This document shows positions 15,936 through 43,700 of a stretch of 64,000 nt of DNA, one piece after another. A program made the position numbers and the translations under genes. The stretch spans positions 35,774,001 to 35,838,000 of the forward strand of contig CM060733.1 in NCBI GenBank assembly GCA_030704615.1, in the 5' to 3' direction. The DNA comes from Takakia lepidozioides (lineage: Eukaryota; Plantae; Bryophyta). Numbering within the stretch: the stretch's first letter is position 1; the number at the start of each line of letters is the position of its first letter. The notes beneath the pieces were generated by a model. The model ran no database searches. It saw nothing but the letters and a program-made list of their open reading frames with translations, and was not told the DNA's origin.

Positions 15936-16174
15936 ATTTTTTCTTTTTTCTTTTTTTTAAAGGGAAACACCTTGGAGCGACAGCTCACAAATCAGGCCCC
16001 TTGATAGAGAGGAGAAAATAACCTCTCAGTAACCTTGCTGTAAGGCTTTCAGATGGGACACCGCGCAGGGAAGAGGGCGAAGAGCGTACCACACCCGTCA
16101 AGTAGCAGGATTTGACCCCAGGGTCATCCGGATGGCACTCAGTGCACTTTACCAACTGAGCTACTGACTGTTGG
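15936..16174 (-). mobile_element. tRNA-derived SINE
   Basis: Minus strand has A box tagctcagttgg, B-box-like ggtcaaatcc and an A-rich tail. tgaaataa direct repeats at 15928-15935 and 16175-16182. Confidence 0.75.
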
Positions 16175-19540: not shown

Positions 19541-20002
19541 TCAGTCCTCAGATTATACCTTTAGGGTATAAGTAAATTATTTTTGTCAAATCATTTACCC
19601 TCGGGGTATGGATAAATTGAAATCTCAAAAAATTATTTACCCTCCGGGTATGCGTAAATTAACTTTTCAGATTTCTATATAACCCCCGGGTATGGATATA
19701 TATGCCAAAATACACCCTGAGGGTATGAATAGTTTCCGGGTATGGATAGTTATTTCCATTAATATATAATTTAATGGTTTTAAAGAATATTTTTTTTAAT
19801 TTTTTTATTTTCAAAAAAGAAACCAGGGAGCGACTGCTCACAAGATGTTCTTCAATATGTACAAAACACAAAAAAAAAAAAAAAAAAAAAAACCAAAAAA
19901 AACAATCTATGGTAAAAGAGAAAATTAATAAGATATTGCATAATATTTTGGTGTTAATTTCCAATGCAAGATGGAGGAGGTTTGAGATTTTAAAAAAAAC
20001 AC

Positions 20003-20160
20003 ATCGGCTGGTAGCTCGGCTGGTAAGTGCACAGTGTGTGTCACTCAGGTGGTTCGGGGTTCGAACCCGCTGCCCTGCCCCGTGTGTGGGATTGTTCGTG
20101 TGACGGTATGTTTGGGCGTTGATCGTCAGGTCTCATGGCCCATAAATGAAAGGGGGTTAA
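20003..20160 (+). mobile_element. 5' part of a tRNA-derived SINE interrupted by the large transposon; probable tail at 37686-37760
   Basis: A box tagctcggctgg and B box ggttcgaacc, with no tail on this side. An (AAAT)n/A tail lies ~55 bp past the right TTAA. Confidence 0.6.
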
Positions 20161-20740
20161 CCCTCAAGTTCCCAAGCCCTTTTTTGACTTTTTACCAATT
20201 TTGGGTACCCAGCTACAGTAAATTGCCCCTAGAAAATCATCCAAAGATTCCATCCTTATAGCAATGGGCCCAGCTCATTTATGCATGACATACCAAAAAA
20301 GGATCCAAGTCCACCGTGGAAATTGTGAGATTATAGCATTTGCCCGGACCATATATATCAGGTCCCAAATAAAAATGAGAAAGAAATTGTTTTGACCAAA
20401 TCAAAAGCTAGCTTTATCCAATTTTGCTTGCCCCAAGACCCACCATTTCCAAATCAACAGTGGAGTGGCTATGACCCCACTAAATTGCAGGTCCAACTGA
20501 TTTTTTCACCTATGGTTGCTATTCATGCAATTACATGGGGGTTGAAATCTCAAAATTGACAAGAGAAAATGTGCCTCCAAATGAAGTACTTTTTTTTTAC
20601 AATTTTAAAAAAAAGCCAATGGTGGATGTGTGTATGTAATGCTCACACACCAGTGAAGTGTTTTTTCCAAAATTGCTAATGTTCTGCCAAAAATGGCCTT
20701 TGGAGTGCAAGCCCTTATCATGCCCCAAAACGTAAATGAG

Positions 20741-20990
20741 AAGATAATAGGAATAATGTAAGAACTTAATGCAAGCGCGTCAGGACGGTCCAGCCCTGAC
20801 ACCCGTACCGCCGGTTCTTCGCCTCCGGCAGACATCGAAAGGCAGCCGGCTGGGCTCGGTCAATCCCTCCCCACCCCCGCCCTCATCCCATCGGCGTCGT
20901 CGCCCCCTGCGTCGTCGTTCTGCGACACCAGTCCGCCGCTTCCAGCAGTCCGCCAGTTCCCTGTAACCCCCGCCCCGGGTTCAACCATCA
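20741..20990 (+). repeat. Left arm, unique GC-rich part of the long internal inverted repeat
   Basis: gaagataataggaataatg...gcaagcgcgtcaggacggtccagccctgacaccc...ggttcaaccatcaccccc is the reverse complement of ~37270-37503. The ORF track shows near-identical peptides on opposite strands (20769+ and 37305-). Confidence 0.95.
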
Positions 20991-22630
20991 CCCCCATGTA
21001 ACCCTCTGTAACTCCGCCGAGTGTAACCCACACCACCATGTAACCCTCTGTAACCCATGTAACCCTCTATAACACCGCAGAGTGTCACCCCCACCCCTAT
21101 GTAACCCTCACTACATGTAACCCTTTGTAACACTTTGCAACCCATGTAACCCTATGTAACCCTCTGTAACACCGCAGAGTGTAACCCTCACTCCATGTAA
21201 CCCTCTGTAACCCTTTGTAACCCATGTAATCCTTTGTGACCCTCTGTAACCCATGTAACCCTCTCTGACCCTTTGTAACCCTCACCACCATGTAACCCTC
21301 TGTAACACCGCAGAGTGTCACCCTCACCCGTATGTAACCCTCACTCCATGTAACCCTCTCTGACCCTCTGTAACCCTCACCACCATGTAATCCTCTGTAA
21401 CCCATGTAACCCTCTGTGACCCTCTATATCCCTCATCAGGTGTAACCCTTACCACCATGTAACCCTCCGTAACCCTCACAAACCCTCTGTGACACCGCAG
21501 AGTGTCACCCTCATCCCATATCACCCTCACTCCATGTAACCCTCCGTAACCCTCACAAACCCTCTGTGACACCGCAGAGTGTCACCCTCATCCCATATCA
21601 CCCTCACTCCATGTAACCCTCACAAACCCTCTGTGGCTCTGTAACCCTCTGTAACACCGCAGAGTGTCGCCCTCACCCCTTATGTAACCCTCACTCCATG
21701 TAACCCTCTGTAACCCATGTAACCCTCTATGACCCTTTGTAACCCTCACCACCATTTAACCCTCTGTAACACCGCAGAGTGTCACCCTCACCCGTATGTA
21801 ACCCTCATTCCATGTAACCCTCACCACCATGTAACCCTCTGTAACCCATGTAACCCTCACCACCATGTAACCCTCTGTAACCCATGTAACCCTCTGTGAC
21901 CCTCTATATCCCTCACCAGGTGTAACCCTTACCTCCATGTAACCCTCTGTAACACCGCAGAGTGTCACCCTCGCCACCATGTAACCCTCACTCCATGTAA
22001 CCCTCACAAACCCTCTGTGGCTCTGTAACCTATGTAACCCTGTGTAACACCGCAGAGTGTTGCCCTCACCCCTTATGTAACCCTCACTCCATGTAACCCT
22101 CTGTAACCCATGTAACCCTCTGTGACCCTTTGTAACCCTCACCACCATGTAACCCTCTGTAACACCGCAGAGTGTCACCCTCACCCCTATGTAACCCTCA
22201 TTCCATGTAACCCTCTCTGACCCTCTTTAACCCTCACCACCATGTAACCCATGTAACCCTCTGTGACCCTCTATATCCCTCACCAGGTGTAACCCTTACC
22301 ACCATGTAACCCTCTGTAACACCGCAGAGTGTCACCCTCGCCACCATGTAACCCTCACTCCATGTAACCCTCACAAACCCCTGTGGCTTTGTAACCTATG
22401 TAACCCTCTGTAACACCGCAGAGTGTCGCCCTCACCCCTTATGTAACCCTCACTCCATGTAACCCTCTATAACCCATGTAACCCTCTGTGACCCTTTGTA
22501 ACCCTCACCACCATGTAACCCTCTGTACACCGCAGAGTGTCACCCTCACCCCTATGTAACCCTCACTCCATGTAACCCTCTCTAACCCTCTGTAACCCTC
22601 ACCACCATGTTACCCTCTGTAACACCGCCT
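20960..22630 (+). repeat. Left TGTAACCC-motif array (C-rich on +) with higher-order units
   Basis: Dense tgtaaccc/tgtcaccc/tgtaacacc units. Marker ctatatccctca recurs at ~21424, 21904 and 22271. Confidence 0.95.
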
Positions 22631-22794
22631 CGTGTACATCATACACGTGTAAACTATCCGACGGCCGAATGGAGGTTTAAATAGAGGCCAAAACCCTAAT
22701 TTGCTCTCTCCATCCGTTTTTCATATTCCTAGCTCGCTCGTTTTTTTGCTTTGGGGCATCAGCTTTCTGCAATTCCCATGGTGCCCAATCGGCT

Positions 22795-23170
22795 TCACAC
22801 ATCAATGCGAAAGATTTGTAGTTCATTCAGTTCAGTATCGTCATCCCAGCAACATACAAGACAACTTTTTCCGCACAGCGATCCGTCAAATCTATTACTA
22901 TGGTTTTCTCTACGATTGATACGGTTGTCTCTATTCTTTTTCTTTCTCAATGTCATTCTTGTTGTTTTGTCACCGTCCCCGATGGCTATGGTATTCCTAA
23001 GATCCGCATTAGGAAAGGGTTTTGTTTCTTTCGGTCTAGCCATGCAAGCAGCCGCTCATTTGACGGGGTGCCCATTCACTCTCCTCTCGTGTATCTTTTG
23101 TTCACACACCAGCCGGGGCAGCCTACTCATCGCTATTATGGATGCAATACGTATCGAATCATGCGTGTTT
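22795..23170 (-). pseudogene. Degenerate inverted paralog of the N-terminal Zn-finger region of the ZnF-Ulp1 gene
   Basis: RRVNGHPVK*AAACMARPKETKPFPNADLRNTIA vs SRLNRHIVDGTAACMARPKGTKPFPDAELKHAMA at 24.1-24.25 kb. Confidence 0.75.
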
Positions 23171-23926
23171 TGCAAGCACTGTCAACCGGTTACATGTCTG
23201 ATGGTTTATATGACTACCTCACGTGTGCTATGGTTACACACAGGGGGTTACACGGTGTTTTCTTTCTCAATACATGCTAGCTTGGTAGACAGTTTAGTAA
23301 TGGAGGTTTAGATGGGGTTGACATGTTTGATGGGTTACGTGGATGTTGCGCTCGCAGAGCCACATAGGCTAGGGTTACATGGGTGGGGCATTACATTGAC
23401 CATGTTTACCTGGAGGTTGCATACTAAAGGTTTGATATGACAGGGTTACATCGATGTTGTGTTCGGGAGTCACATAGACTAGGGGTACATGAGGTTGTGA
23501 CGAAGGGTTACATCATATGTGGGTACCTGACGGAGGGTTACACTCGACGTGCCTGGCATGCGGGTAACGGCCGGTTTGTCGCGCTCACAAGTGTAGGGTT
23601 ACGGGTTACACTCCGCTATTCCGGGTGACATCGGGATTGCAACTCATACACGTGTGAGTCAGTACGGATATAATTGATTGCAAGCCGCCAGATTTTAATG
23701 AACCGCCGTCTTTCGCTTAACGGACGTGCCTTACGGGTGACATCTAGCTAGCTTCGTTCTTCGTTCTTTCATCATTGTTCAGTTTTCCCCTTCTCGCAGC
23801 CTTTCATATTCTTCCTGCACTCCTTGTTGTGCGTGCTCCCTGTTGTGCGTTCTTCGGAATTCTCTTGGTCTTGGTCTTTTCTTGCTCTTGCTCTTCTCTT
23901 CTCTTCTGTCAGCTTTTTCTTTTGTC

Positions 23927-26900
23927 ATGGCTGATTGTTATTTGTTCCCTGGAGAGGCTACTATTCCATTTGATCACTTGAAAAGGGATGGCGAACGAGT
24001 TCGCTTCTGGTACACTGAGCATGAGCATGCTACAATGATCGCGTACTGCCACACCAGGTGTAGAGAGGCCAAGGTGGAGGGAGCAAAGGGCCGGCCTAAG
24101 TTCAAATGTCCTTATTGTGGGGCAGTAAAGGTAGATAAGAGCAGATTGAATCGGCATATTGTCGATGGAACGGCCGCATGTATGGCCAGACCGAAAGGAA
24201 CAAAACCGTTTCCTGATGCGGAGCTCAAGCATGCCATGGCTGTTGAAAATGTGATGAATTCTGTTCCAGCTTCTTCTGTTGATGCATATCATGCATGGAT
24301 TCCGCAAAATAGGGTGGCTTTGGGTGAGATTGCAGATCCTATTGAAGTGCCTGCTGTTGTACCTTCTTCGGCTATTTCTGCTATAGAGGTTCCATCTTCT
24401 GGTGCTCCTGTTGTTTCTGTCCCTGGTCCTTCTATTTGGCAGGTTTCTAACGAGAGAGACAAGCGGCGATTGAGCCCGCCTCTACCTGTCCCTATTGCAA
24501 AGAAAATCAACATTGGAAACCGGGGAAACCGGAGCTCAAGGTTCATCTTGCGAAAGCGAACTCCAGGCTCAATCCTTCTGCTACCGCATGGCCTTATTCC
24601 TCAGTTCCCATTTCCGAATGTCAATGAGAAGGGGTTTTGGCCGGCATTCCAAGAATTTGTTGCGTGAGGCGAGGGCGCAGTCCATGCGACAGCTGCAAAA
24701 TCAAGTTGGGTTCTATCGACAGACAATCAAGTTGGATTCCCTGCCATTTCTCTGTTTTTCAAATTTTGGGCTGTTGTGTATCCATGTAACCCCTTGTGTT
24801 ACCCCCCCTGTCTCTCCTGTGGTGTGTAACCCAGAGTGTAACCCACCTACAGAGGACCCCTTTTAAAAACCCCTATGGTGTGTAACCCACCTCTGTGTAA
24901 CCCCGTGTAGCCCATCTTGTTTGTAACCCATTTTCATGTGTAACCCCTCGTGCTGTAACCTTTTTCTCTGGTGTAACCCCTCATGCTGTATTGCGCAGGG
25001 AGCTCGATATCATCTTAGAAGCGATGATATGGACAGTGTTGTTGCTGCCCACAAGGCGTTTACTGCCCAGCCTGATCATGGTCCATTAATGATAGAGGAA
25101 TTGAATCGGGTGAAGGAGTATTTAGAGAGCATTGAGCATCCTGACATGCCAAAGCAGAAAAGAAAAAAGGTGGGAGACTTACACGAGTCCATCGAGAGAG
25201 CCAAGCCTCACATGATGATGACACGATGGACGAACTAGCTGTTGGCAATACCGACCTTGACGATGCCAGAACTTCAAATCCTCTTGTCATCACTATTACT
25301 GTAGATGGAATCAAAGGTTTGGTTGTTCCAGATCCGTTGGAATTCACTCGTGGTTTTGCCGAAGGATTGATCAGTCAAATGGAGAATCTCACCAAACCGC
25401 ACATTGGACCGCCACCACTCCTTTTGAGAATTCTGGCCCACAACGATGTAAGAAATCATGGCAGGTCAGTTTCCCAAACGCATCCCAGGTTGGGGTTCAC
25501 GACTGAACTTCTGGAAAGTGCTCTTACGGCCTCAAAGGTGAAGGACCTGGTCGATGAGTATTACGGCTTTAGTCTGATGTACTTTGCACAACCTGGTGAC
25601 GGAATTGCGACCTTGGATTCTGAGCTCGAAGACTTAAGATCGAGTTTGAGTACAGAAGAGTGGGGTGACCGGTCAATTAAGATCAACGGAGCTATACAGT
25701 TTTGCAAGGCAAGCCGTCGTCGCGCCGCCCATCACTTTGCGATCCGACAGAGAGAATCGTTTATCCAACTTTGGTGTTGTGGCCTCTTCAGCGAATCACC
25801 AACAGAAATGGACTTCAATGCGCGTTTGGGCATCCAGTATATGAGAGACCTTGGGTCTGTAGTGCCTTGGTATCTCTGTAATTGTTACTCCATCCACTGT
25901 CACCCCTCTCGTCGTGTAACCCCTTTGTGTGTAATCTTGTAATCATTGTAACCCTCGCTATGTGGAACCTTGTAACTCAGTGTAACCCTCGTTGTGTGTA
26001 ACCCTGTAATCAGTGTAACCCTCGCTATGTGGAACCTTGTACTCAGTGTAACCCTCGTTGTGTGTAACCCTGTAATCAGTGTAACCCTCGGAGAATGTAA
26101 CCCTGTAATCAGTGTACCCCTAATGGTACCCCTCGCTGTGTTACCCTAGATTTGTTACCCTCTCGTTGTGTAATCTCAGTAGTGTAACCCATGGTAGTGT
26201 AACCCATTGCAAACTACTGTCTCTAACAGGGTGGTGTAACCCACATCGTGTAATCCGAACCATTGTCTTGTCCTAGTCAGTGTAACCCTTACATAGTGTA
26301 ACCCTTGCACTTTCAAAAACCTTGTTCCACGACTAAAAACCTTTGTCTTTTCCCCGATGCAGATGAGTCCGAGCTCATGACCAATCAAGTCACCAATGCG
26401 TTCAAAAACCTTTTTGAGGCTCAACGTGAGCTTCACGAAGTTGTGTATGGGGCCCCTCCACAATGCGATACAGGGGCATAGGGGGCGCGCAGACGATCGA
26501 TGGGCCAATTTCCGCCCCGCAGAGCGACGATGTACATGACGAGGACATCATTCCAAGTCAATCTGCCGTTGTATCTTTGTCGCAGGTTGGTGAATTGTAC
26601 TCAACCCAGCTGCACTTAGGGGTGAACCTAACAGACTTGACGCGGGATTTGCCCATGAATTCTGATACTAATACTGAAGATGATACATCAAGGTGGAACA
26701 CCCAATTGCAAACCTCTTTGTCCGCAGCCCCAGTCATTTCTTTTGAAGGTCTTAATCGAAGAATCGGGGACCCGCTTGACCTAGAGTCTGTGTATGACTT
26801 TGAATCTGGAGATGCTAGGTTGAACCCTCGATGCAGCAATGTAAGTATTTGTCAGGATCATGTGGTCAACCTCTCTCAGAATGACCCAGCCTTCGTGGGT

Positions 26901-29434
26901 CCCATTGATGCGCAGGGTGACACTGCAAGGGGAGGATGCCCTGAAACCGAGGGTTACACTGCACCTGAGGGTGACACTGTGCAGAGAGGAGCAACAGGGA
27001 AGGAGGGGGTTACACTGCACCTCAGGGTGACACTGTGCAGAGAGGAGCAACAGGGAAGGAGGGTTACACTGCACCTCGGGGTGACACTGCGGATACCGGT
27101 GTGGCTGACAATGCCGTGAGGGACATTGTCGTGGGTGACACACCATTGCCCGTGAACACTGCAACTTCCGTTGAGAGTGACATTGACATGGGTTACACTG
27201 ATAGGGGTGACACCCTACAGCCAACCCACATGGTAGATGTCAGTGAGTGTAACACTGTCATGGATGACATTCCACTACCACTAGTCGTGGAAGGTGACAC
27301 TCCTTTGCCACGGCCACTAGTCGCGACGGATGACGGTCTTCCGCTAGACAACATGGTCTTGGAGGGTGCAGAGAAGGGCGACACAATCAAGGATGGCATT
27401 GAGGAGGTTGATGCAAAGAAGAGTGACATCGACATGGGTGACACGGGGAAGGGTGTCACCGAGGAGGTTGTCAGTTGGAAGGGTGACACAAAGCAGGGTC
27501 ACACTGAGAAGCGTTTCACTGTGGAGAGTCACGAAGAGAAGGATGTTGCGGAGCATCTAGACACTGAGAAGAGTGACACTGCCAAGGGTGACACACATAA
27601 GATTGTTATTCAGCAGAGTGACACTAGGAAGGAACCCGATGAGAAGGGTGACACTGCGAAGAGTGACACTGATAATGCGGCCAAAGAGAAGGGTGACACT
27701 GAGACCAGTGACACTGAGAAGGTAGCCGGAGAGAAGGGTGACACTGAGATGCGTGACTCTGAGGAGGTAGCCGAAGAGAAGGGTGACACTAAGAAGAGTG
27801 ACACTAAGGAGGTAGCCGAAGAGAAGGGTGACATTGAGAAGGAAGCCGAAGAGAACGGTGACACTGAGAATTGTGACACTGAGGAGGTAGCCGAAGAGAA
27901 GGGTGACACTAAGAAGCGTGACAAGGGGTTTGAACAGAAGGGTGACACTGACAGGGGTAGCACCGAGGAGGTGAGCTGTGACACTTCTGCCCTTGGTCAA
28001 TCACCTCCCTAGCACGTCTCAGACGAGGGAGTGCAGTCTTCAACACTTGTAGCAAACTCAGAACAAGGCACCTCTGGCTCAGAAATTCCCCCTACCGGTG
28101 GCATTGTCAGGGTTGCAGAGAATCCCAGGAGGTCAAAACGGCCGCTTGCTCAAAGAAAGCGGTTGGCTGAACCCCCTAGCGCTGACAAAGAAGTATCTGT
28201 TCTTGTCGCACCCAAAAAACAGCGAACCAAACCGAAAGGCAAAAGTGCAGGGGTCTCGGAGGTTGACGTTGTCCAGCAGCAAGAGGTCCTTGCCAAGCAC
28301 TTGCGGGAGCGTTCGAGGTACCTCATTGTACTTTGATCCTCTCTGATTTTGAATATTGATTATAACTCTTGTATGATGCATCGTAATGTTCGTAATGTGC
28401 GGTTTGTTGTGCAGACTAAAACAACGGTACTTGACAAAGTTCAGAATGGTGTCGGACCCTCCTGGGGCGCCCGAAGTGAAGTTTTATTATGGCGATGCCT
28501 TCCTGGCTTCTAGTCCGTTACAGTTTTACTTGGAAGAGACAGTTTTTGAGCCGATGTATAAAATAAGAGCAACTGTCACAGATGCATTGCTCTCGGGTTA
28601 CAACAAACTTCTGGAGGCCAAATTGTTTAAGGCTATCGCACCTAAGTTTGTCATCTGTGCTCCTTTCCAATGGCATGTCATGCGTACCAATGGTAACGAT
28701 CTGCAGACGCTATTCGGGTTGGTGCAAGAATGGTACACTCAGGATGCCCGAGGGATGGTGTTCACAAAGAATCGAGATCTTGTGGACGTGGTTGTCATCC
28801 CTATTGTCTTCGAGTTAGTAATTTCAGCGTCGACTGAGCATGTTGGGTTACACTCCTCTATTCTAGACTGAGTTGCACTAGTGACTGCTGACTAGTTGTG
28901 TAACACCGTTTAGAGTTACAGTACAAAGGGTTACACTACTGGGATACACCACAATGGGTTTCATTGGAGATGTTTTTTTCTATTCTGACGTAACGGCTTT
29001 GTTTGTGTTGCAGTGATCACTGGAGTGTTGCTATTTTAGAGCGCCGAGGTCGGATAGTACATTTGGACTCCCATAAAACCATTGCCCGACCCAAACTCAT
29101 TGAAGGAATTTTGCGAAATTTTGCCATAGCGTTCTTTGATTTCATGCCTGGATCTGATGACTTCAGTTACGTCATGGAGAGGATGGAATGGTTTGAGGCC
29201 AGTGTCCCCCAGCAATGGAGCTGTTGGGAGTGCGGCTATTATGCACTTTGTTTTGTGCAATTTTACTTAGAGTGGAAGTTCAATGTGAAAACCACAGAAG
29301 ATCGAACCCGTCATAGGCGGGCGTTTACTGCAAGTTGGTTCAACGAGTCAACCATGATAGCTTCCCGTACTCATATGATTAGTTGGCTGTGTGACGAGAT
29401 GGACAAAGACTTGGTCAGATGGCCAAAGAAATAA
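23927..29434 (+). pseudogene. Multi-exon transposon gene: N-terminal Zn-finger-like motif, acidic KGDT-repeat linker, C-terminal Ulp1/C48 SUMO-protease domain (disrupted)
   Basis: CPYC...LNRH motif. Predicted exons ~23927-24663, 24979-25869, 26363-28317, 28415-28813 and 29014-29434, with GT-AG sites. The last splice yields VVIPIVFDDHWS...HLDS...VPQQWSCWECGYY (H-D-C triad plus oxyanion Q). Frameshifts near 25220, 26460 and 27030; stop at 28010. Confidence 0.75.
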
Positions 29435-30783
29435 ATAGCGTCTCTTGATGCATTTTTGCTTCTATGTGGTTTGTTCGTAACACTTCACAGTTTGGGTTTC
29501 ATGCAATGGGCTTACATGGGGTTACACCTTATAAGGTTACATGAAGTGGAATCATAGACAAGTACTTGGGTACACCTTTGGGCCCTGGGGCAATGGGCTT
29601 ACACTCTGTGGGTTCACACATAAGTGATGGGTTACACCATGTCGGGTCTCACAACGTGGGGTTACACTTATGGGTTACATACAATGGGCCTAGGGTTACA
29701 TGGTTGGGCCTTCCTGGCTATGTCAGGGTCACGTTGCTGAAACAGTATACTTTCGTGGCATGTAACCCCACCTCGACTATGCGCATTTGTTTTATTTTTT
29801 ATTTTTTTCGCACTGAAGTGTTTGTGCACTGAAGTTCTCAGATTTATACTACATGGGGTTACATACATGAGGGCTATGTACAATGGGTTACATACGATGG
29901 GGTCACAATAGTGTGGGGGTAACATCTGGTCGGGCTTCATACTTCTTGGAGTTACAACACTCTGGGTTACACTCACTCAAGAGGGTTACACAGTTCTAAG
30001 TTACACTGTGCACAATGAAAGTGGGCAGGGTTGCCTATACAAGGGCTACGTGTCGTGGGGATACATAAGATGGGGTGATGTAGCATTGGGGTTTATAGCG
30101 TGCACCCTAAATTGTACAATGGGTTACATGCGATGGGGTGACATCAATGGGGGTTACATGTGGTCGGGATACATACTTCTTGGGGTTACACAACAACAAG
30201 TTACACTCCGGAGGGCTACACTGGTCCATAACATAGGTTGAACGGAATGATTATCTATCTCATGGATTACACGTCCATGGGTTACACACAAATTGGGTTA
30301 CACATAGAGGGGTTACACATACAAGGGCTAGTGTTGGTGACTAAAGGTGCTCGACTTCAGCATCTTCCCACTCTGTATTGAAGGGTCATGTAACCCCGGC
30401 AGACTAACCCAGACCCTGTAGTCACATTGTAGTCATCGACTTATAATTCTCAGAGTTACACCACTGACAACAATATTCTATGGGGTTACATACTGGGTTA
30501 CACTGTTGATAGTTACATTGCAGTTACACCACAATGAGTTACACTGAAGAGGTTCACACTCATCTGTGTTACACTGTGTGGAGTACCACAGATGTGAGTT
30601 ACACTAAGTAGAGCTATGTTACGTTATGAAACCCCAGACAGTGTAACCCTGCGGTGTGTCACCCCGGCCCATGGGTGTCCCATTGAGTGGGTTACATAGG
30701 TTGAATGTGGATGGAATGGCAAAGTGAATAACAACCCATGAACAGACATGTACTTCATATTAAACTTGGTGATCACAAAATAA

Positions 30784-31140
30784 GTGTCATTGCCAATGGA
30801 CTCAATGGTCACGACTCAGGAGGAAGTTAACTCATTGGATGTAGCCGGGTTTTGCCTGGTCCCGAGGGATGATATCCCACGATTTCAAATGGAGGAGGAC
30901 GTTCGTGCCCACCAGCCCGCAACTCATCAGAATCGGGACTATTACCCCAAATGCAGATGGGGCAAGCAATATAACCGCAAAAAACAGACAGCTCTTAATA
31001 GGACGAAGGTCGGATTGGCGATGTCGCTGCGAGGTATCGTTCAGAGCTTCCGTGATGTTCCTCGACCGGGGATGGGAAGAGTTTACACCATCAGTACTTC
31101 CAGCTCAGCGACCAACGGGCAGGCCCTCACCACTATGTAA
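30784..31140 (+). CDS. Truncated ORF of unknown function, cut off by the middle repeat array
   Basis: 118-aa complex-sequence ORF, free of the motif, between motif-rich DNA. Ends abruptly in array sequence at ~31125. Confidence 0.4.
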   Translation: MSLPMDSMVTTQEEVNSLDVAGFCLVPRDDIPRFQMEEDVRAHQPATHQNRDYYPKCRWGKQYNRKKQTALNRTKVGLAMSLRGIVQSFRDVPRPGMGRVYTISTSSSATNGQALTTM

Positions 31141-32840
31141 CCCTCTGTAACCCATGTAACCCTCTGTGACCCTCTATATCCCTCACCAGGTGTAACCCTT
31201 ACCACCATGTAACCCTCTGTAACACCGGAGAGTGTCACCCTCGCCACCATGTAACCCTCCGTAACCCTCACAAATTCTTTGTGACACCGCAGAGTATCAC
31301 CCTCATCCCCATGTAACCCTCACAAACCCTCTGTGGCTCTGTAACCCATGTAACCCTCTGTAACACCGCAGAGTGTCACCCTCACCCCTTATGTAACCCT
31401 CACTCCATGTAACCCTATGTAACCCATGTAACCCATGTAACCTTCTGTGACCCTTTGTAACCCTTACCACCATGTAACCCTCTGTAACACCGCAGAATGT
31501 CACCCTCACCCCTATGTAACCCTCACTCTATGTAACCCTCTCTGACCCTCTGTAACCCTCTGTAACCCATGTAACCCTCTGTGACCCCCCATATCCCTCA
31601 CCTGGTGTAACCCTTACCACCATGTAACACCGCATAGTGTCACCCTCGCCACCATGTAACCCTCCGTAACCCACACAAACCCTCTGTGACACCGCAGAGT
31701 GTCCCCCTCATCCCCATGTAACCCTCACTCCATGTAACCCTCTGTGACCCTCCGTGGCTCTGTAACCCATGTAATCCTCTGTAACACCGTAGAGTGTCAC
31801 CCTCACCCCTTATGTAACCCTCACTCCATGTAACCCTCTGTAACCCATGTAACCCTATGTGACCCTTTGTAACCCTCACCACCATGTAACCCTCTGTAAC
31901 ACCGCAGAATGTCACCCTCACCCCTATGTAATCCTCACTCCATGTAACCCTCTGTAACCCATGTAACCCTCTGTGACCCTCTATATCCCTCACTAGGTGT
32001 AACCCTTACCACCATGTAACCCTCTGTAACACCGTAGAGTGTCACCCCCATCCCTATGCATCCCTCACTCCTTGTAACCCATGTAATCCTCTGTGATCCT
32101 GCGTAACCCGTGTAACCCTCTGTGACCCTGTGTAACCCATGTAACCCCATGTAACCCTCACTCCATGTAACCCTCTCTGACCCTCTATAACCCATGTAGC
32201 CCTCTGTGTCCCTCTATAACCCTCATCAGGTGTAACCTTCACCACCATGTAACCCTTAGTAACCCTCTGTAACACCGTAGAGTGTCACCCTCACCCCTGT
32301 GTAACCTCACTCCATGTAACCCTCTGTGACCCTCTGTGACTCTCTGTAACCCTCAGCAGGTGTAACCCTCACTAGGTGTAACCCTCACCACCATGTAACC
32401 CTCCGTAACTCGTTTATCCCTCTGTACCACCGCTAAGTGTCACCCTCACTCCATGTAACCCTCCCATGTAACCCTATGTCACCCTCTGTAACCCATGTAA
32501 CCCCATGACCCTCTGTAACCCTTTGTAACCCATGTAACCCTGTTACTCCGCGGGGTGTAACCCTCACTCCATGTTATCCTGCATCGTGTAACCCCAATGT
32601 GCAACTCTCACATTGTAACCCCACCATGTAACCCCGATACTGTATCAATCCCCTACGTGTAACCCCCGATTGTGTCACTCATAGCTCGTGTCACCCCGGA
32701 TCCTTTATCCCCAACGCATGTCACCCCTGTTCGTGTAGCCCCTTGGTGCCCGGCAAAAATTGGCGGGCTCCAAGAGGTGTCAGATATTTTGAATTCAAAC
32801 CTGGTTACACGATTCGGTGACATCAAAACCCACGTGTAAC
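31125..32840 (+). repeat. Middle TGTAACCC-motif array (same orientation as left array)
   Basis: Same subunits as 20960-22630 (ctatatccctcaccaggtgtaacccttacc, aacaccgcagagtgtcaccc), decaying towards the transposase start. Confidence 0.95.
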
Positions 32841-33076
32841 TCCATCATCGCTCGTCATTTTCACCAGGTGCGTAAACGACGTGCAGTCCCGAGGGCTCCG
32901 CTGCGTTGCCCGCGTGTGTTATGCGATTTGTACTGTACTGGTGGTACTGTTGCTGCTAATGGCATGTGCTGCCGCGAAGGTGCTAGACGAGGAACGCAAA
33001 GCAGCATTGGAATCAAATGGTTTGAAAGATGAGGCGGGAGAACTCTGTCATTTGCAGCATTTGGTATCTCATTTGA

Positions 33077-36000
33077 AATGCATCCTACAGCTGCCCATAG
33101 ACGGGCTTTTCAATCACACAAACCTTCGTTGGATACGCCAGGTTTCCAGGGAAAAGGGAAACGGATATCCATCGAAGTAGCTGTCGTTCCATGGTCTCGC
33201 ATTCCTGATTTTCTGGAGGGAGAAAGGAGTAGAGTGGATGGGAAGACCCAATTTTATGTTCAAGATCGAAGGTACCGTGAGTTGCCAGATTTGACAACAC
33301 CGCGTGCAAACAGTTATCGTCAGTGGCATAAGTAAGTCACTTATGAGGGTTGTATAACATTCCCAGCCCCACTTCTTTCTGCTAGCCTAACAAAGTCGTA
33401 TATGGCGATAACCCTCCTCGCTTTATATGCTTTTTTTGCAGGTACCACTGCTGCTACGGCCCGATAGATAGGCGCACAGACCCGCCGATTGTGAAGAAGA
33501 AAGAAAAACTGATAGCAGCCTCCGATAATCAAAAACCAGTCAAGCGAATCAGACGTAAGGCAGCGGATTTCGGAGAGTCATACAAACGTGGGTGTACGTG
33601 TAGCTTCAAAGTTGGCCAGTGTTTTCTAGATTCAGAGTTGGCAATCATCACATACTTCCAGAAACAGCATGTGGATGCAAAAGGAAAGCCATGTCATGGT
33701 TCAGCTGACCCCTCTTCCCATTTCTCGCGATTCGTGCATGCCCCTCGTCTCAGCCAATATATGAAACAGTGGATCGTCGATAGTCTTTGCAGTGGCCTAT
33801 CTCCAGCTATGATTATGACACAACACACTCAACAGCTCCAGGAAGCTTGTGCGTCTCAGCCAGGCATGGAGTGGAGTCGCGATTGTTTCTTGTTTGAGTA
33901 CGACGTGAGAAACATTGCCGACAAGCTTACGATTGAGAGTTACAAAAAAATCCAGATGATGCACAAAGTGTACGTATGTGGGTCGATAGCAATCCTGAAA
34001 GCGTCTTCTTCTACCATGAAGAGACAGCGCCAGTGGCGGGTGATTTGAAGTTCGTAATTGGAATACAAACGGAGTGGCAAAAACAGAAAATGATCGACCT
34101 GGGACACAACCGTGTGGTATCCTACGATGCAACATTTGGGACCAACGAAAATAAGGTATTCGTGTCACGCTTTACCTTTCATCGCATTCTGAAATGTGAG
34201 TGCCATGCAACTGTTGCCAATATTATAACACTCACCTTATTCATTTTTGTACCATTGCGACATTGCAGTTCCCAATGTATACCATGATGGTGTTCGACGA
34301 ATGGCTCAACGGCATACCTGTTGCTTATATTATATCAGCGAGAAACAAAACCACTGTCCTGAGCCCCTGGATGAAACGTCTTCACGACCGACTTCTTCAG
34401 AGCAAACCAGATTGGAGGCCAAATGCTTTTGTTGTCGACGATGCAGACGCAGAAATCAATGCTATCAGGTACACGGCTAGAAGTTACAATGTTCTGAGTC
34501 ACACAGTAATTCACACTACAAGTTGCATGCACGAGGGGTTTCATGGATCGGGCTACACTGCTGCTAGTTACACTGAGAATCACAGTAAGAGTTAAACTGC
34601 CAGTTACACGAGGGGGTGCATTGCTGCCTGTAACACTTGGAGTTACACTGTCAGTTGCTTGAGGGGTTACATGGATTGGGTTGCAGTGTTGTCTGTTACA
34701 CTGAGGGTTACACTATCAGTTAGACAGATGGTTATACTGCCTTGAGTTGGACGGAGGGTTACACTGCTGTGAGTTAGACCGAGGGTTACACTGCTATGAG
34801 GTAGACATGTGAGTTACACTGGGAGCATCGCAGAGGGTTGTATGGGTTGGGTCGCTCTGAGAGTTATACGGTGTAACATGGATTGCGTTACAGCGCTGCG
34901 AGGGGTTATATGTGTTGGGTTACACTGCTGTGAGTTTCACTGATAGTTACATGACCAGATGCACGAGGGGTTACATGAGTCACACTACTAAGAGTGATAC
35001 TTTGAAGAGTTACACTGCGAAGAGTTCCTCTGATAAGAGTTACACTGACAAGAGTTACACTGATGGATTGGGTGGCATTTGATGTGTGTGCGTGCAGGGA
35101 ATCGTTTGGGGACGTAGCGATATTTCTATGCCTTTGGCATGTTCGCCGCGCTTGGCTGAAACATTCGTGGCGTAAGATGCCCGATCCATACACTCGCAAT
35201 GCTGTTTTGAAACAGTTTGGCGACGTAATGTACGGCATTAACGCCTGTGTGGGAGTCACCCCAGAAGAGTGGGCGCTGGAGCGACTGGAAGATTTGAATT
35301 ATTCATATCCGCTTGCGCGTGACTTCCTACGTTACATCAGAATGGAATGGGTCCCAAAACTGAGCATGTGGATCACGGGGGCTCGTTATATTCCCCACGC
35401 AAGTCAGGATACTAATGCCGCATTTGAATCTTGGCACGGAAATTCGAAGGCTCGTTTACGCTCGGGAAAGCAAAGGCTTGATGGCAGAAGAATCGATTGG
35501 CTGATCAGCGAACTCGTGGGTCCTTTTAACCCACTATTGGTATAGAGATAACTTGAAATCGAAAGGCTTCAAAAGGAATTTACGACAGGAGGAATTTATC
35601 AGTAATGTTGTTTGGACTGCAAGGGAGATCCCTGATGTCAATGTTCATTGGCCCACTGTTCCTGGTCATCCGACGATTGTGGATAGTGTTCAAACGGCCG
35701 GTCGAAGCTACACAATCTATGCACCTGCGACCACCTGAGCTTGTTGCGATTGTCCATGGGCTTTGAAGGGTAACTTGTGCAAACATCAAATCCGCGTTCT
35801 TCAATTGATGAAGCCAAATCTGAAGGAAGGGCTTATTGTGAAGCTCTGTGGCACAAAGCTCGGGACCATTCATGGAGGTCTTCACATGTTGATGAAATCG
35901 GAACTTCCAGATATTGATGCAGAGGAGGAAGTTGTGAATCTAGCAGAGCCTACGGAGTGCTCAGCATCATCCCAGCGTGGTCGGCAGGAGCCATCGGATG

Positions 36001-36251
36001 TTTCATCAATTGAATCTGAGATGAAGTCCCTGTCGCTTCTTGGCAATGAGAGTGAAACAATGCGCAAACATTTGCTTGCCGAGCTTCGTTGTGTTCGTGG
36101 GAGGCTGTCCACTTTACAAGTTAGAATCGACAAAGGTCTGTTGCACCCTCTTCAAGCAGTTCCATTCATAAAAAATGATGATGGAAACAACATGTCCCTT
36201 GCCAGGAAAGTAGAGGGTCATAGAGGGTTACATGGAATAAGGGTTACATAG
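33077..36251 (+). pseudogene. Mutator-superfamily DDE transposase with a WRKY/GCM-like N-terminal Zn domain and a C-terminal SWIM finger (4 exons, a few lesions)
   Basis: YHCCYGP...KRGCTCSF...HVDAKGKPCHG; SYDATFGTN (D1); FVVDDA (D2); CLWH (CxxH); NAAFESWH (E); SWIM CDCPWALKGNLCKH. Introns ~33332-33441, 34156-34268 and 34469-35097. Frameshifts near 33170, 33945 and 35525; stop at 35736. Confidence 0.88.
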
Positions 36252-37310
36252 GGGTGAGGGTGACACTCTGCGGTGTTACAGAGGGTTACATGGTGGTGAG
36301 GGTTACATGGGTTACAGAGCCACAGAGGTTTGTGAGGGTTATATGGAGTGAGGGTGACATGGGATGAGGGTGACACTCTGCGGTGTCATAGAGGGTTTGT
36401 GAGGGTTACAGAGGGTTACATGGTGGCGAGGGTGACACTCTGCGGTGTTACAGAGGGTAACATGGTGGTAAGGGTTACACCTGGTGAGGGATATAGAGGG
36501 TCACAGAGGGTTACATGGGTTACAGAGGGTTACATGGTGGTGAGGGTTACAAAGGGTCACAGAGGGTTACATGGAGTGAGGGTTACATAAGGGGTGAGGG
36601 CGACACTCTGCGGTGTTACAGAGGGTTACATGGGTTACAGAGCCACGGAGGGTCACAGAGGATTACATGGAGTGAGGGTTACATGGGATGAGGGTGACAC
36701 TCTGCGGTGTCACAGAGGGTTTGTGAGGGTTACGGAGGGTTACATGGTGGCGAGGGTGACACTCTGCGGTGTTACAGAGGGTTACATGGTGGTAAGGGTT
36801 ACACCTGGTGAGGGATATAGAGGGTCACAGAGGGTTACATGGGTTACAGAGGGTTACATGGTGGTGAGGGTTACAGAGGGTCAGAGAGGGTTACATACGG
36901 GTGAGGGTGACACTCTGCGGTGTTACAGAGGGTTACATGGTGGTGAGGGTTACAAAGGGTCACAGAGGGTTACATGGGTTACAGAGGGTCACAGAGGATT
37001 ACATGGGTTACAAAGGGTTACAGAGGGTTACATGGAGTGAGGGTTACACTCTGCGGTGTTACATAGGGTTACATGGGTTGCAAAGTGTTACAGAGGGTTA
37101 CATGTAGTGAGGGTTACATAGGGGTGGGGGTGACACTCTGCAGTGTTATAGAGGGTTACATGGGTTACAGAGGGTTACATGGTGCTGAGGGTTACAGAGG
37201 GTCATCGGGTTATATGGGTTACAGAGGGTTACATGGTGGTGTGGGTTACACTCGGCGGAGTTACAGAGGGTTACATGGGGGTGATGGTTGAACCCGGGGC
37301 GGGGTTACAG
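36210..37310 (-). repeat. Right array (GGGTTACA on +), inverted relative to the left and middle arrays
   Basis: gagggttacatgg and gagggtgacactctgcggtgttaca units are reverse complements of the left-array units. Confidence 0.95.
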
Positions 37311-37503
37311 GGAACTGACGGACTGGTGTCGCAGAACGACGACGCGCCTGGGGCGACGACGCCGATGGGATGAGGACGGGGGTGGGGAGGGATTGACCGA
37401 GCCCAGCCGGCTGCCTTTCGATGTTTGCCGGAGGCGAAGAACCGGCGGTAGGGGTGTCAGGGCTGGACCGTCCTGACGCGCTTGCATTATTCCTATTATC
37501 TTC
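37270..37503 (-). repeat. Right arm, unique part of the long internal inverted repeat
   Basis: Reverse complement of 20741-20990, with small indels. Confidence 0.95.
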
Positions 37504-40500
37504 CTTTTTAATAGGTCGAAGCTTTTGTTTTTTTTTTAATTTTGTTTTTTGCATCATACTGGAGGACAAATCCCTTGTCATTAAAGCTTCAGGAGGGGGC
37601 CCCATCAGATTAGATCATGCAAAAATTAGGTGAACTGCAAATTCAAAGTGACCCCATTCAGGTCGCTTGGGAACTTAAGGGTTAATCTTTCCCCCTCCTC
37701 AAGGGCTTGGATTGTGGGCTGTCGCTCCCAAATTTCCTTAAATAAATAAATAAATAAAAACCCCTCAAGGACCTAAATTGTGGGCTGTCAGGTTTTCTTT
37801 TATATATATATATGCGAGATCTGAAGAGGCATTGTTTGGGTTATATGACATTTAAGGAATGGTACATATGTAACATTTGTTTTAGCGGTGATTGGAGCTT
37901 TCTTATAACTCAAGGCTCCCTAACAACGCAACAAAAAGAGAAAAGACTTAGCACATAAAGGCTATGAAGGCACATAAAGGCCCTTATATACCGATTAGAT
38001 ATACCCTTCATTTTTAACATTTATACCCTTCCGGAAAGTAGGGTATGTGAGACGTCTCGAGCAGGGTAAATATAAGGAGAAGGGGTAATCATAAAAATAT
38101 ACCCTGATATAAGGGTATACATCCGGGTACCTAAACTTGGCACACCAGGGTATATATATATCAATATACCCTGATATACCCGGCGGGTATATCAGGGTAG
38201 TTCATATACCCGCCCAACACTGGATATTACCTTGAGAAGCATACGAGGAAGTAGTTTTCAGCCAAGGAGAGGAGGTAACGCCTGAGGCACAAGAGGGGCT
38301 TAGCCATCTTTTGAGCCCTAACCCTAGATTGAGGACCAGGTGAAGAATCAAACCTAAGACCATACGAGGATGGGTAATTCTCCTTATTGCCCGAGCTAAA
38401 ACCAGGGCTTTGGGCCGGGCATTGAAAAGCCAATACTCTTGTGCCGGTCATTTGCAAGGCAAGAGCATCCCCACTCTATGCCCGTGCATCCGTACTTCTC
38501 GTATACATGTTCGACTTGCCTCCAAACGTACCCACACCCTTGGCCCCCAACCGTATACGTTGTTCAGGGCGGACAATGAACCGCCTCTCTTTCGGTGGAT
38601 CCACGCACGATATTCAGCATCCTGAACCCTTCCCGCAACCGAGTTTACAATGGATATGTCATAGATGCAGAAGAAGCGTGTGAGAAGCTTATGAGAGCAT
38701 ATGAGAACTTCGTGGGAACTCCAGCAAGGCAGGAACATCGGATACGGGGTGTAATGAGGGGCAAGGGTGTGGCTACGAGCAACCGACTCCTTCAGAGAGA
38801 AATGAAATGAAATGGTGCTTTATAACGTCCGCGGAAAGCTCATAGAGCTTATGGGACAAAATGGAAGAAAACATGAGAGGCCGGCGTAACTAAGAGCCCA
38901 CCCATTCACACACCTTTCAAGAGTCCGGAACCAAACTCTTCAAAATAAGCATAGAGGGGCCATTCCAGTCAAAAGGGTGGGGATGCTCTTAAAGACCGCC
39001 AGGCTTCACTACACCTACCAAAACTACCAAGGGAGTAACCCCAAGCTGATCCATGAGAGAGATGATAGAAAACCTTATAAGTAGTACAAACACGACACCT
39101 ACCAGCATCGCTTAAAAGAAGATCTGTCATGAGGTTGTACCTCTCTTGTTACGGATGTGGGCCCATCAGCTCACACACTACACTACTACTGGATTCCATC
39201 CCTTATTAAATATCTCCCACTCCGAGAAACCCAGTTAGGTGCACAATATGACTATAGTGATCGTAAGCTTCGGCCGGTAACTTCCAAATGCTCATACTTG
39301 CAGCTAAAAGATGTACTCCCGTGGCCTCAAGTACCAAAAAGAGCCCCGACCCTAACTGACACTTGACCTTAAGACTGAGGCGGCAGCCACTGGTGCCAAA
39401 AGCTCCACACAATCTAGCACCCTGTCTGCAATCTTCAAAAGGTGGGTCCTACTAGCCTTGCTTGAGTGGCCACGCTGCAAGTTGCGGCGCAAAGCTCTAA
39501 ATTCGGACAGTCCTGGTCCAGTCCTGGTCAACGTCACACTTCAGCCGAAATTTTGTGTGGAGCACTTCAGGCTGTTCAGCCGCCATGCACATAATTCCGT
39601 TCAGGACTTCTTATGATTGCATGCAAACAACAAAAAAAGTGCAACGGCACCAATTAACAAAGAGTACAGCCTTTTATACTGGGCAGCCCATACGGGGCTC
39701 CACTTCCGAGGTACCTGCTTTGGGCCTTGGAAGTTGGCAATACCTTTCCAGTATGGCTTTGGGCTTTGTGCCTGTCAATCGATTATCCTCTTACTAGCAT
39801 TCTTTTGGGGCCTATTTAGCCTTCCAGGTAGAGTTCAGGGCTCTACCCAACTAATCTGATTTGGGTAGGACTCAATTTCGGTTAGTAGGGCAGTCCTTTC
39901 ATCATTGTAGTGCCACAGTGTAACGTACCTCCATATCTGTTTTTAGAGTTTTCCACCTGTTGTGCCCCTGCAGAACTTATTCCCATCATTAGCCTCACGA
40001 GGTTCAATATGATGTACCTCAAATTTGAGGTATGGGCGTATGGGCTCATTACTATCACACATGTAATGTCATAAACTCCCACCCAAATACGCATAGTCTA
40101 GTGTATGTAAACATGTAAATCCTTTTTATGATATTTGCCCAATCCGATTAGTCATTTTTGGGCTCCTGGTCCTGCAAACAGTCTACCGTAATCCTGCTCC
40201 ACTATGCAGGAAGGACAGAGATTCAGCGGAGGTGACGCACTTGAGGGTCAGCCCATGAATTGACAGTGTCCCGTCAATTGTCCCGGTGCGCACTTGATGT
40301 GTCCCCCGAAGAGTTCCAAATCCGAAACTACAAGTAGCTCCAGAGAGATCTCCACTCTCCTAGATCAGCCCATACTACGTCTACCGTTGTTGAACAGAAG
40401 AATATCCACCCTTCTCTCAACACTGTTTCCTCCTGAGCTTCTACTAGATGTTCGTAGACGTGCCCTGCAGCCCTTCTCTAGCAGTGAGGTTTGATGGGTG

Positions 40501-40733: not shown

Positions 40734-43700
40734 ATGGAGACGATGATCGAGCGGCGATGGCTGCCGCTTTGTTTCCAGAAGAGAACGAACCCGTTGAGGA
40801 TGGCAGGAGTTCGCGCTTCAATCCTGCTAATGGGCTGGATCCTGGCAGCAGCTGTTGGTTTGGTTTTGTACAGAGCCGCACTGCAAGCGGAGCACGAGGA
40901 ATCCCAGCTCAGATGTATGAACCGGAAAGAGGTACTGTCAGTTGACTCCTTGAAGAACTCCTCTGGGAAGTTCAGTTTTGACATCTCAACTGTTCTTCAA
41001 ATGAGTATTGTTAAAGAAAGTTGAGATTTGTCAGCTTCTTTGCCCCAACTCGATTCGATGACCCTTCTCAGAGTTGGCATATCATTAATTCTGGTAGTTG
41101 TCAGAAAGAGTGGAAACGGTAGTGAACATGGGAAGCATGTATCCGGAGTTTGCAAGATGATCACATGGAACAGTGCCCAACCGTTCATGGGTCTCCGTCT
41201 CTGTCTTCCAGCTCTTACACGAAACAGACCAATTTTTTGGGGTATGAGCCTCCGAGATGAAGCATCTTGTCATCTTGGACTTCTTCAAATCGAACTTCTA
41301 TTTTCTGCCAGTGTGAAGTGTGTATTTTACTTGCCGTACGCATGTAAACACAGCTGAGACTCGCATGGTTTGGCGAAGTCCAGCTGGATTGATGAATTTG
41401 GCACTTCCCCTACTGGGGAATCATGGTTTTAAGAGTTTACAAGTAAGACGCAGATTTTGTTTTTTCGCAGATGGAGTTTTCTATAAAGTTGCAGGACAAA
41501 TGCACTGCCCCACGTATAGTAATGCAGCTTAAACATGCTCAAGCTGCAGAGCTCAGTGCCCTTCAAAACTTCTCGCTTGAAGGGTCCTTGAATGTCTGCT
41601 TTATGTGTTGTCGGTTTTGGGAGTCAGGTCCTCCAAAAACGTGGTGGAAGAGAAGGTGGCAGCATTGCCCAATGGTGGGGTGCTGCTGCTGGAGAATGTA
41701 AGGTTCTATCCGGAGGAAGAGAAGAATGTCCTCATTACTGTCACAATTCCTCGAGGGAATTCACTTACTTATTCTCGGGTGCCATAATGACTCTTGCAGG
41801 CACTGCGGTCAGAAATTGAGAACTGTGTCAACTCCTCCTTCATGATATTGGGGTTCATGGCCAGTGTTCCAAGCATGACTGAAAGCAACTGGCTCACTTT
41901 TACAGAACAGACACTCTTTCTCAGGCCCAATGTGCGAAGGCTTGTCTACTTGCAACGAGTGCTCGACACTGAAAGGGCTGCTTTTGAGAAGAAAATGAAC
42001 AGGTCCATACTTCAGACAGACAACACTATGTCAAACAGATTTGTGCGGACGGTGGCTGCAGAGTATACTCCAATCATCTATGAAACTCAAGATTTGAATT
42101 ACTCTATGGTGGACTTCTCATCCTATGCACTTTTCAATCAGACCCTTTATAGAACTCGGACAACAGGCGCGTTTGCTTTCACCCCGCCAGCTTCAAGTAC
42201 AGGGATTTGGCGCATAGGGGCATATCAGGCTTATTACGGGGGCACTGATGTCCAGTCGTTGACGACTGCTCAATCTAGGGAGGAGGCTTGTCAGGGCTAT
42301 GTAGGGACAAGTCTGGAGGTGCAAAAGGTGTTTCATGCAGTGCTTTCAAGGTACATAAATTCCACCTTCTGCACATCTATATCACCACTAGGAATTCGAG
42401 AATGAAAGCATCTTCTTTCTAAAAATAAGGTCCCCAATTGGGAAGACGAAAATATTTTTAGGGAATTGTGGAGTCCTTTAGATTCCCATTGGCTGCATGC
42501 AGGTGATTCTTGTTGAAAATCTACACTTTTGATATCTAGCACTATTACTCCACCATGTAAATTTTCTTTGAATGGCCTTTCTGTTCAGGTTTCAAGACGT
42601 TGGCATGGATGTCACGGTAATATATGTGGTTAATCAGTCTGCGAGCTTACCCTGGTTTTATAATTGCAGTGACTTGGCTGTCTGCACACTAATCCTCTAT
42701 GACAGTGCATCAAAGGCAAGTGAACCACCCACTGTGGTTGTACCATGGGCCTACGATTCTTGGAACCATTCCTTGGAAGTGCGATGTTATGCAAAACAGA
42801 ACATCAAGCTGTATGCTGTACGAAGTGTAATTGCATGGCCACTGCTTATGATCATATTGATACTGCTATGTGCTGTTATTGTATATTTGGTTCTCAAGAG
42901 AATGGAAGCCATTAAGGGGGATGTGGTTATTATCGAGAAGATGAACATTGATTTGAGAGCTGCCAAAGTTGCTGCTGAAGCTGCAGACAAGGCCAAGTCC
43001 AGTTTTCTTGCCACTATTTCACATGAGATCAGGTAGTGGTTTTGCACTGTGTCATGATAGGGTGTTCAGCCTGTACAGGGATGAAGGATATTTTGCCTTA
43101 AGTTTTTGTTCCTAATTCTGGTGCTGTTTTCATGGCTGCCATTTGATGATTTTAATGAGAGGGTTAATTTGTGGATTTCAGCCATGAATGTGGGTTTTGG
43201 ACTCTATATGAAGAGAGGCTGGATTAATCCTGAGTTGATTTCCTGGCCTTGTTATAGGTTATTACCTGTGTATGGGGATAAAGGCACAAGAAGAACCCAT
43301 ACAACAATGTTCAATGTCTCCATCCCCTCCCAATGGCCAAACATAAAAGCTCCCCAGGTCATGGTAGCAGTAACTGTATGGCCAACCGCTTAGTCTGTTG
43401 GCAAGGTTTGTATGTGATTGCTTGCTTGTTTCTTACACTGTGCTTGTATGCTTGGGCTGTTTGGTGGGTGCAGGACTCCCATGAATGGAGTAATAGGTGA
43501 GCATTCTGAATTTTCTTTCTCAAATGCTACATGTATGTCTTGAAAATATCGTTAGTCTGTGTTGAATGGTTTTCTCATCAACGACATTGTTATAGTTGCT
43601 CAGGATCTTGGAGACATACCGTTGTAACAAGATTGAAAGGGTGCACTGGTCAAAGTACTGTAGCTCCATCCCCAGTATTCCATCCATCAGATGCTCTGGG

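Follow-up and report, generated by a model that had tools for sequence, protein, structure and literature searches.

Probable nesting of a Ulp1-carrying Mutator-like element within a TTAA-flanked, piggyBac-like element in the moss Takakia lepidozioides

The stretch of DNA analysed here, referred to as the window, comprises 64,000 nucleotides of the Takakia lepidozioides genome (GenBank assembly GCA_030704615.1, contig CM060733.1, positions 35,774,001 to 35,838,000 of the forward strand). It contains a 17.5-kb insertion in which an outer pair of piggyBac-style termini encloses the long arms, transposase gene and cargo of a Mutator-like element (MULE). An initial annotation, made from the letters of the sequence alone, had described this insertion as a transposon with TTAA/CCCT ends, a Mutator-type DDE-SWIM transposase and a Ulp1 protease. 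At the left end TTAA is followed by CCCTCAAGTTCCCAAGC and at the right end GCTTGGGAACTTAAGGG is followed by TTAA. The two sequences are complementary at 16 of 17 positions and thus form a 17-bp terminal inverted repeat (TIR) that starts with CCCT and ends with AGGG, as had been annotated. A search for this terminus with up to three mismatches returned these two sites only in the 64-kb window, against an expectation of 0.00 from shuffled sequences. The left TTAA is preceded by GGGGG and the right one is followed by TCTTT. When the two outer parts are compared with each other, their similarity ends at the 17-bp TIR, and no open reading frame (ORF) with a family match is found in the left part. 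The outer parts are described below as a miniature inverted-repeat transposable element (MITE). The coordinates of all features are compiled in Table 1.

Table 1. Features of the insertion and its host repeat, in positions of the window
Feature	Position	Strand	Basis
Host repeat resembling a short interspersed nuclear element (SINE), 5' part, with box A/B-like TAGCTCGGCTGGT and GGTTCGAACCC; ends in the target TTAA	20000-20160	+	contig junctions
TTAA target-site duplication, left copy	20157-20160	.	window read and single-TTAA empty sites
Outer non-autonomous TTAA element (piggyBac-like MITE), left part, TIR 20161-20177	20161-20737	+	terminus search, multi-copy contigs
Inner MULE, 16.8 kb, apparently rearranged, non-autonomous copy	20738-37505	+	arms, contigs, transposase homology
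MULE left terminal unique TIR (GAGAAGATAATAGG...), with extra 13 bp at 20754-20766	20738-20968	+	arm alignment
Left subterminal array of TGTAACCCTC-type repeats	20969-22634	+	motif counts
Cargo ORF with weak C2H2-like zinc-finger match	23843-24667	+	E 0.004-0.06, under Pfam cut-offs
ORF with KGDT/KSDT repeats, which are the element motif GGTGACAC read as protein	26915-28012	+	no Pfam family
Ulp1-like cysteine protease (Peptidase_C48) gene pieces	28386-29434	+	PF02902 match
Internal copy of the left-arm repeat array, without the terminal ~230 bp	31124-32634	+	self-comparison, motif counts
MULE DDE and SWIM transposase pseudogene	33428-36215	+	homolog alignment
Transposase pieces	33428-33946, 33940-34206, 34212-34469, 35060-35533, 35523-36215	+	
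Right subterminal array (GAGGGTTACA orientation)	36212-37271	+	motif counts
MULE right terminal unique TIR	37272-37505	-	arm alignment
Outer TTAA element, right part, TIR 37665-37681	37506-37681	+	terminus search
TTAA duplication, right copy	37682-37685	.	window read and empty sites
Host SINE-like repeat, 3' part, with (AAAT)n/A tail	37686-37760 (~37760)	+	empty-site contigs, in-window paralog
Outer end pattern with its TTAA: TTAA, then CCCT[CT]AAGTTCCCAAGC			

Contigs from four DNA runs of the same organism, X1 and X4 among them, were aligned on positions 19700-21700 of the window. In 28 contigs the sequence upstream of 20000 is unrelated to that of the window, and 12 contigs represent an empty site, passing from GGGGGTTAA (ending at 20160) straight into TTTTTCCCCCTCCTCAAGGGCC with a single TTAA. 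The sequence TTTTTCCCCCTCCTCAAGGGCC in these contigs is the one that follows position 37685 in the window (TCTTTCCCCCTCCTCAAGGGCTTGG). A diverged SINE-like paralog with an A-rich tail and box A/B-like motifs is also present within the window itself, at 15940-16170 on the minus strand, and aligns unbroken across the junction; this paralog and the empty sites of the contigs carry a single TTAA or TTA. The single TTAA at the paralogous empty sites therefore identifies 20161-37681 as one insertion into the SINE-like repeat. A 3-bp duplication of TTA/TAA with one asymmetric terminal base, in place of a TTAA duplication, would be a less parsimonious description of the same junctions. The host repeat gave no match with ARAGORN or in Rfam, so that its tRNA origin and pol III boxes were judged by eye only.

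The left outer part (577 bp) is multi-copy. At many of its positions 20-50 distinct contigs share a letter other than that of the window, in each of the four runs its summed k-mer depth, which is a rough measure only, exceeds that of the unique MULE TIR by a factor of 2-4, and the copy in the window differs from the family majority at no fewer than 14 of the 577 positions (at least 14/577). The idea that the outer inverted repeat matches by chance and that no outer element exists takes what strength it has from the shortness of the TIR, at only 17 bp, and is refuted by this repetitiveness together with the shuffled expectation and the empty-site paralogs, which end exactly at the TTAA. Elsewhere in the window there are no further copies of the MITE, of the inner termini or of the cargo. 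A protein search with a 55-aa ORF of the MITE gave no match, and an exact look-up of 10 ORFs of the MITE and its junctions found none of them in the collection. Among metagenome contigs, an exact scan with the 21-nt terminus matched a single contig (L002), in which the match extends over 22 nt only and the adjoining sequence is, by eye, a bacterial RNA-binding-protein gene; as about 0.5 chance hits were expected, this contig was rejected as a copy of the MITE.

The long-TIR element that had been annotated inside the outer ends was confirmed. The outermost aligned positions of its arms are about 20738-20740 and about 37503-37505, and the arms begin with unique terminal stretches that are 97-99% complementary over the aligned 98-145 nt, with one 13-bp indel, followed by arrays of TGTAACCCTC-type repeats of about 1.5 kb on each side. 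Overall the two arms differ from each other by ~3%. In the arms there are 16-24 copies of the motif GTAACCC/GGGTTAC per 500 bp, compared with 0-1 copies in the outer parts (20161-20737 and 37506-37681), and the motif recurs in spacers and introns across 20.9-37.3 kb. Matching to the window starts exactly at 20740 in 43 contigs of run X1 and 49 contigs of run X4, which extend outward by a median of 255 nt. The sequence outside 20740 in these contigs shows an agreement of 0.41-0.42, is AT-rich and unlike the MITE, and yields no shared consensus. Because the contigs leave 20740 for unrelated flanks and do not continue into 20161-20739, the inner MULE is mobile on its own and constitutes an independent mobile unit. 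Directly outside 20740 the consensus ends in GG, which gives a family terminus of G(G/A)GAAGATAATAGG and places the element at about 20738-37505. In its start this terminus resembles those of maize Mu elements. In run X4, 32 contigs match the MULE terminus over its first ~34 nt only (20740-20773) and then diverge (CACGTGCAACCTCTGACAGG...), which suggests derivative subfamilies that reuse the terminal sequence.

Three related elements, whose transposases are 43-45% identical to that of the window at the amino-acid level, could be extracted in full from metagenome contigs (L003, L014 and L005). L003 has 428-nt TIRs at 99% identity and a perfect 9-bp target-site duplication (TSD), CCAAATAAG, and L014 has 665-nt TIRs at 99.5% identity and a perfect 9-bp TSD, GCATGTACA. 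No target-site duplication was found for L005, and none of the three elements is flanked by TTAA. The cargo of these related MULEs matches no Pfam family and shows no similarity to the cargo in the window.

As to the enzyme encoded within the insertion, its assignment to the Mutator-type DDE-SWIM transposases was upheld, but the copy is broken. The exon ORF at 35063-35545 matches 315 relatives, and the full-length relatives carry the domains PF10551 (MULE) and PF21056 (ZSWIM1-3 RNaseH-like) and align along 33428-36215. The exon ORFs of the window taken alone give no Pfam match; the motifs DATFGTN, VVDDAD, CLWH (CxxH) and ESWH and the CxC..CKH SWIM finger are visible in them. Compared with P0003/L001 (97% amino-acid identity), the reading frame of the window copy shifts near 35525 and is interrupted by a stop at 35736-35738, at the position of the tryptophan that immediately precedes the CxC of the SWIM finger, and comparison with the continuous ORF of L004 reveals a further frameshift near 33945. 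With two frameshifts and one stop, the transposase of the window is a pseudogene. The 590-nt gap between its pieces at 34470-35059 is probably an intron. The element motif GGGTTACA/GGTGACAC recurs in the region of this gap (34718-35064) and in the ORF at 26915-28012. A paralog of the transposase gene that is 95% identical comes from run SRR15431198, which is a metagenome of Takakia lepidozioides (PMC9021317). The Ulp1 protease reported earlier was recognized through the segment 29003-29434, which matches PF02902 with E 3.6e-4 and 20.9 bits and so lies just at the threshold (cut-off 20.7 bits).

The order of genes in the window differs from that in the Takakia paralog L001. In L001:1549-1596 the transposase gene reaches its 3' end at the equivalent of window position 36214, and a spacer of 24 nt separates it from the reverse complement of window positions 30812-30789, so that in L001 the cargo is convergent with the transposase. 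In the window, by comparison, the cargo lies upstream of the transposase in the same orientation, nothing separates the transposase from the right array, and an arm array without a terminus is found at 31124-32634. Judged from this arrangement, the window copy of the MULE appears to be rearranged relative to L001. An aberrant event, or one involving two elements, could lie behind both the altered order and the loss of the TSD.

The initial annotation had mildly favoured a single TTAA-targeting element and had given as the alternative a long-TIR MULE nested in a ~0.75-kb non-autonomous piggyBac-like element. It is this alternative that is supported by the contig flanks, the TSDs of the relatives and the distribution of the motif, and we consider it highly probable that the locus consists of a MULE (16.8 kb) inside a TTAA-specific piggyBac-like MITE (~0.75 kb) inside a SINE-like repeat. 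Several observations weigh against this nesting. No piggyBac transposase (DDE_Tnp_1_7, DDD) is present inside the element or among the ORFs of at least 170 aa in the window. An intact MITE copy joining 20737 to 37506 was not recovered from the metagenome contigs or by the protein and ORF look-ups, and no strong loose end 'behind' ~20739 was seen among the 24 of 887 matches listed; that 20737 was joined directly to 37506 in the ancestral MITE is what we infer from the two outer parts. As had been noted initially, no 9-bp TSD borders the inner arms: among direct repeats of 7-11 bp around the inner ends, none qualifies, and the closest candidate agrees at 5 of 7 positions. Finally, the MITE terminus CCCTCAAGTTCCCAAGCCC (20161-20179) resembles the terminus CCCTAACATTACCAAGCCC of the related, bryophyte-associated MULE clade, with which it agrees at 15 of 19 anchored positions in L003:148-166 and at 13 of 19 in L014:357-375. 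The probability of a 15/19 match by chance is ~1e-5 to 3e-4 when unconditioned and ~1e-2 when conditioned on the CCCT start.

The last two of these observations, together with the fact that the only transposase inside the insertion is of MULE type, are also what speaks for a single undescribed lineage in which a MULE-like DDE-SWIM transposase recognises CCCT ends and integrates at TTAA. Such a lineage is nonetheless very improbable here. It is largely refuted by the dozens of contigs in which the inner arms have unrelated flanks. In addition, the related CCCT-ended MULEs generate 9-bp TSDs and not TTAA duplications, the outer ends contain neither the inner TIR nor its binding-site-like arrays and show no relationship to either, and the enclosed transposase is a pseudogene. 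The missing TSD, which had been counted in favour of a single element, is better linked to the rearrangement of this particular copy. We treat the likeness of the termini as a coincidence to be checked, because the CCCT-ended MULEs make 9-bp TSDs and the termini of the window MULE are unrelated. That it reflects real kinship, and that the TTAA/CCCT elements of Takakia are moved not by piggyBac but by a transposase of Mutator descent whose target has changed to the 4-bp TTAA, seems to us only slightly less improbable than the single lineage.

For the nesting of the MULE in the MITE we propose the following course of events. In a first step, which is documented by the empty sites, a non-autonomous cut-and-paste element of ~0.75 kb with piggyBac-style ends entered a TTAA of the SINE-like repeat and duplicated it. 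A large MULE would subsequently, if the two insertions took place in this order, have landed in an AT-rich spot of the MITE, bringing with it long TIRs, subterminal repeat arrays to which the transposase probably binds, the DDE and SWIM transposase and the Ulp1 cargo. The MULE copy then decayed, acquiring the two frameshifts and the stop, and apparently underwent a rearrangement, which may explain the absence of a 9-bp TSD. The structure of the outer ends suggests that a TTAA-specific transposase coded elsewhere, most likely of the piggyBac type, mobilised them in trans, and the MULE-type enzyme would not have acted on them.

A different history, in which the nesting of MULE in MITE was formed elsewhere and the 17.5-kb composite was then moved whole into the SINE by a TTAA-specific transposase, is also compatible with some of the data, since the TTAA duplication and the empty sites bound all 17.5 kb and are silent on the order of events, and since the outer TIRs remain intact at 16 of 17 positions. 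We regard it as unlikely, although less so than either of the schemes with a TTAA-directed Mutator-type enzyme. Published piggyBac-like elements measure 1.7-8.5 kb (PMC5381638), in comparison with 17.5 kb for the composite, and no further copies of the MITE/MULE junction were seen among the contig matches listed. The differences of the MITE from its family, set against the divergence of the MULE arms, fit a MITE that is no younger than the MULE insertion, although this is a weak form of dating.

Both elements of the preferred nesting belong to known kinds, and an interpretation as a hybrid transposon is not supported. The CxxH motif is common to the transposases of Kolobok elements and of MULEs. 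Kolobok elements and T2-MITEs resemble the outer element in targeting TTAA, but they have purine termini (RR/AG, AGGRR; PMC6004289), unlike the outer element with its CCCT start. In piggyBac-like elements the target is likewise TTAA, the TIR is 14±2 bp and the start conforms to C[CAT][CAT][TGA][TAG][TGA] (PMC5381638); the right end of the outer element (CCCTTA) fits this motif fully, and the left end (CCCTCA) fails at position 5. Its TTAA duplication, 17-bp CCCT/AGGG TIR, lack of coding sequence and multiple copies are those of piggyBac-derived MITEs. The putative assignment to piggyBac is drawn from end structure. What distinguishes the outer element from such MITEs as surveyed in 2017, when piggyBac was reported from eukaryotes 'except in plants' (PMC5381638), is its moss host, and a 2025 survey places piggyBac group 4 in land plants (PMC13461360). 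The inner element, for its part, shares long TIRs, a DDE and SWIM transposase, a Peptidase_C48/Ulp1 gene and large size with the Kaonashi/KI-MULE type. Large Ulp1-carrying MULEs of this type have long been known in plants. The inner copy differs from them in lacking a TSD, in carrying an additional arm array internally, in its co-oriented cargo and broken transposase, and in the reach of its dense GTAACCC arrays into introns and spacers.

A Mutator-type enzyme acting on piggyBac-type ends and on TTAA would, if true, have constituted a new transposon lineage; as the evidence points to ordinary nesting, this claim should not be carried forward. The locus instead offers a well-delimited family of TTAA-specific piggyBac-like MITEs with an empty site in an early-diverging moss, piggyBac having been reported in plants only recently, as well as a family of large Ulp1-carrying MULEs with unusual motif arrays. 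The clean three-level nesting should be useful for dating transposable-element activity in Takakia.

A second, fragmentary relic of a MULE transposase lies outside the 17.5-kb element at 2059-2821 on the minus strand and is 30-45% identical in amino acids to the same homologs. Another relative of the MULE transposase, at L013:1397-5112 on the minus strand, is located beside pieces of a gene with a TIR domain (here the protein domain) and LRR, an NLR-like neighbourhood which suggests that this contig comes from a plant host. Pieces of plant genes are likewise found in the window, with PPR repeats at 14040-14738 on the plus strand (E 7.5e-34) and a CHASE domain, as in cytokinin-receptor kinases, at 41794-42405 on the plus strand (E 1.4e-10).

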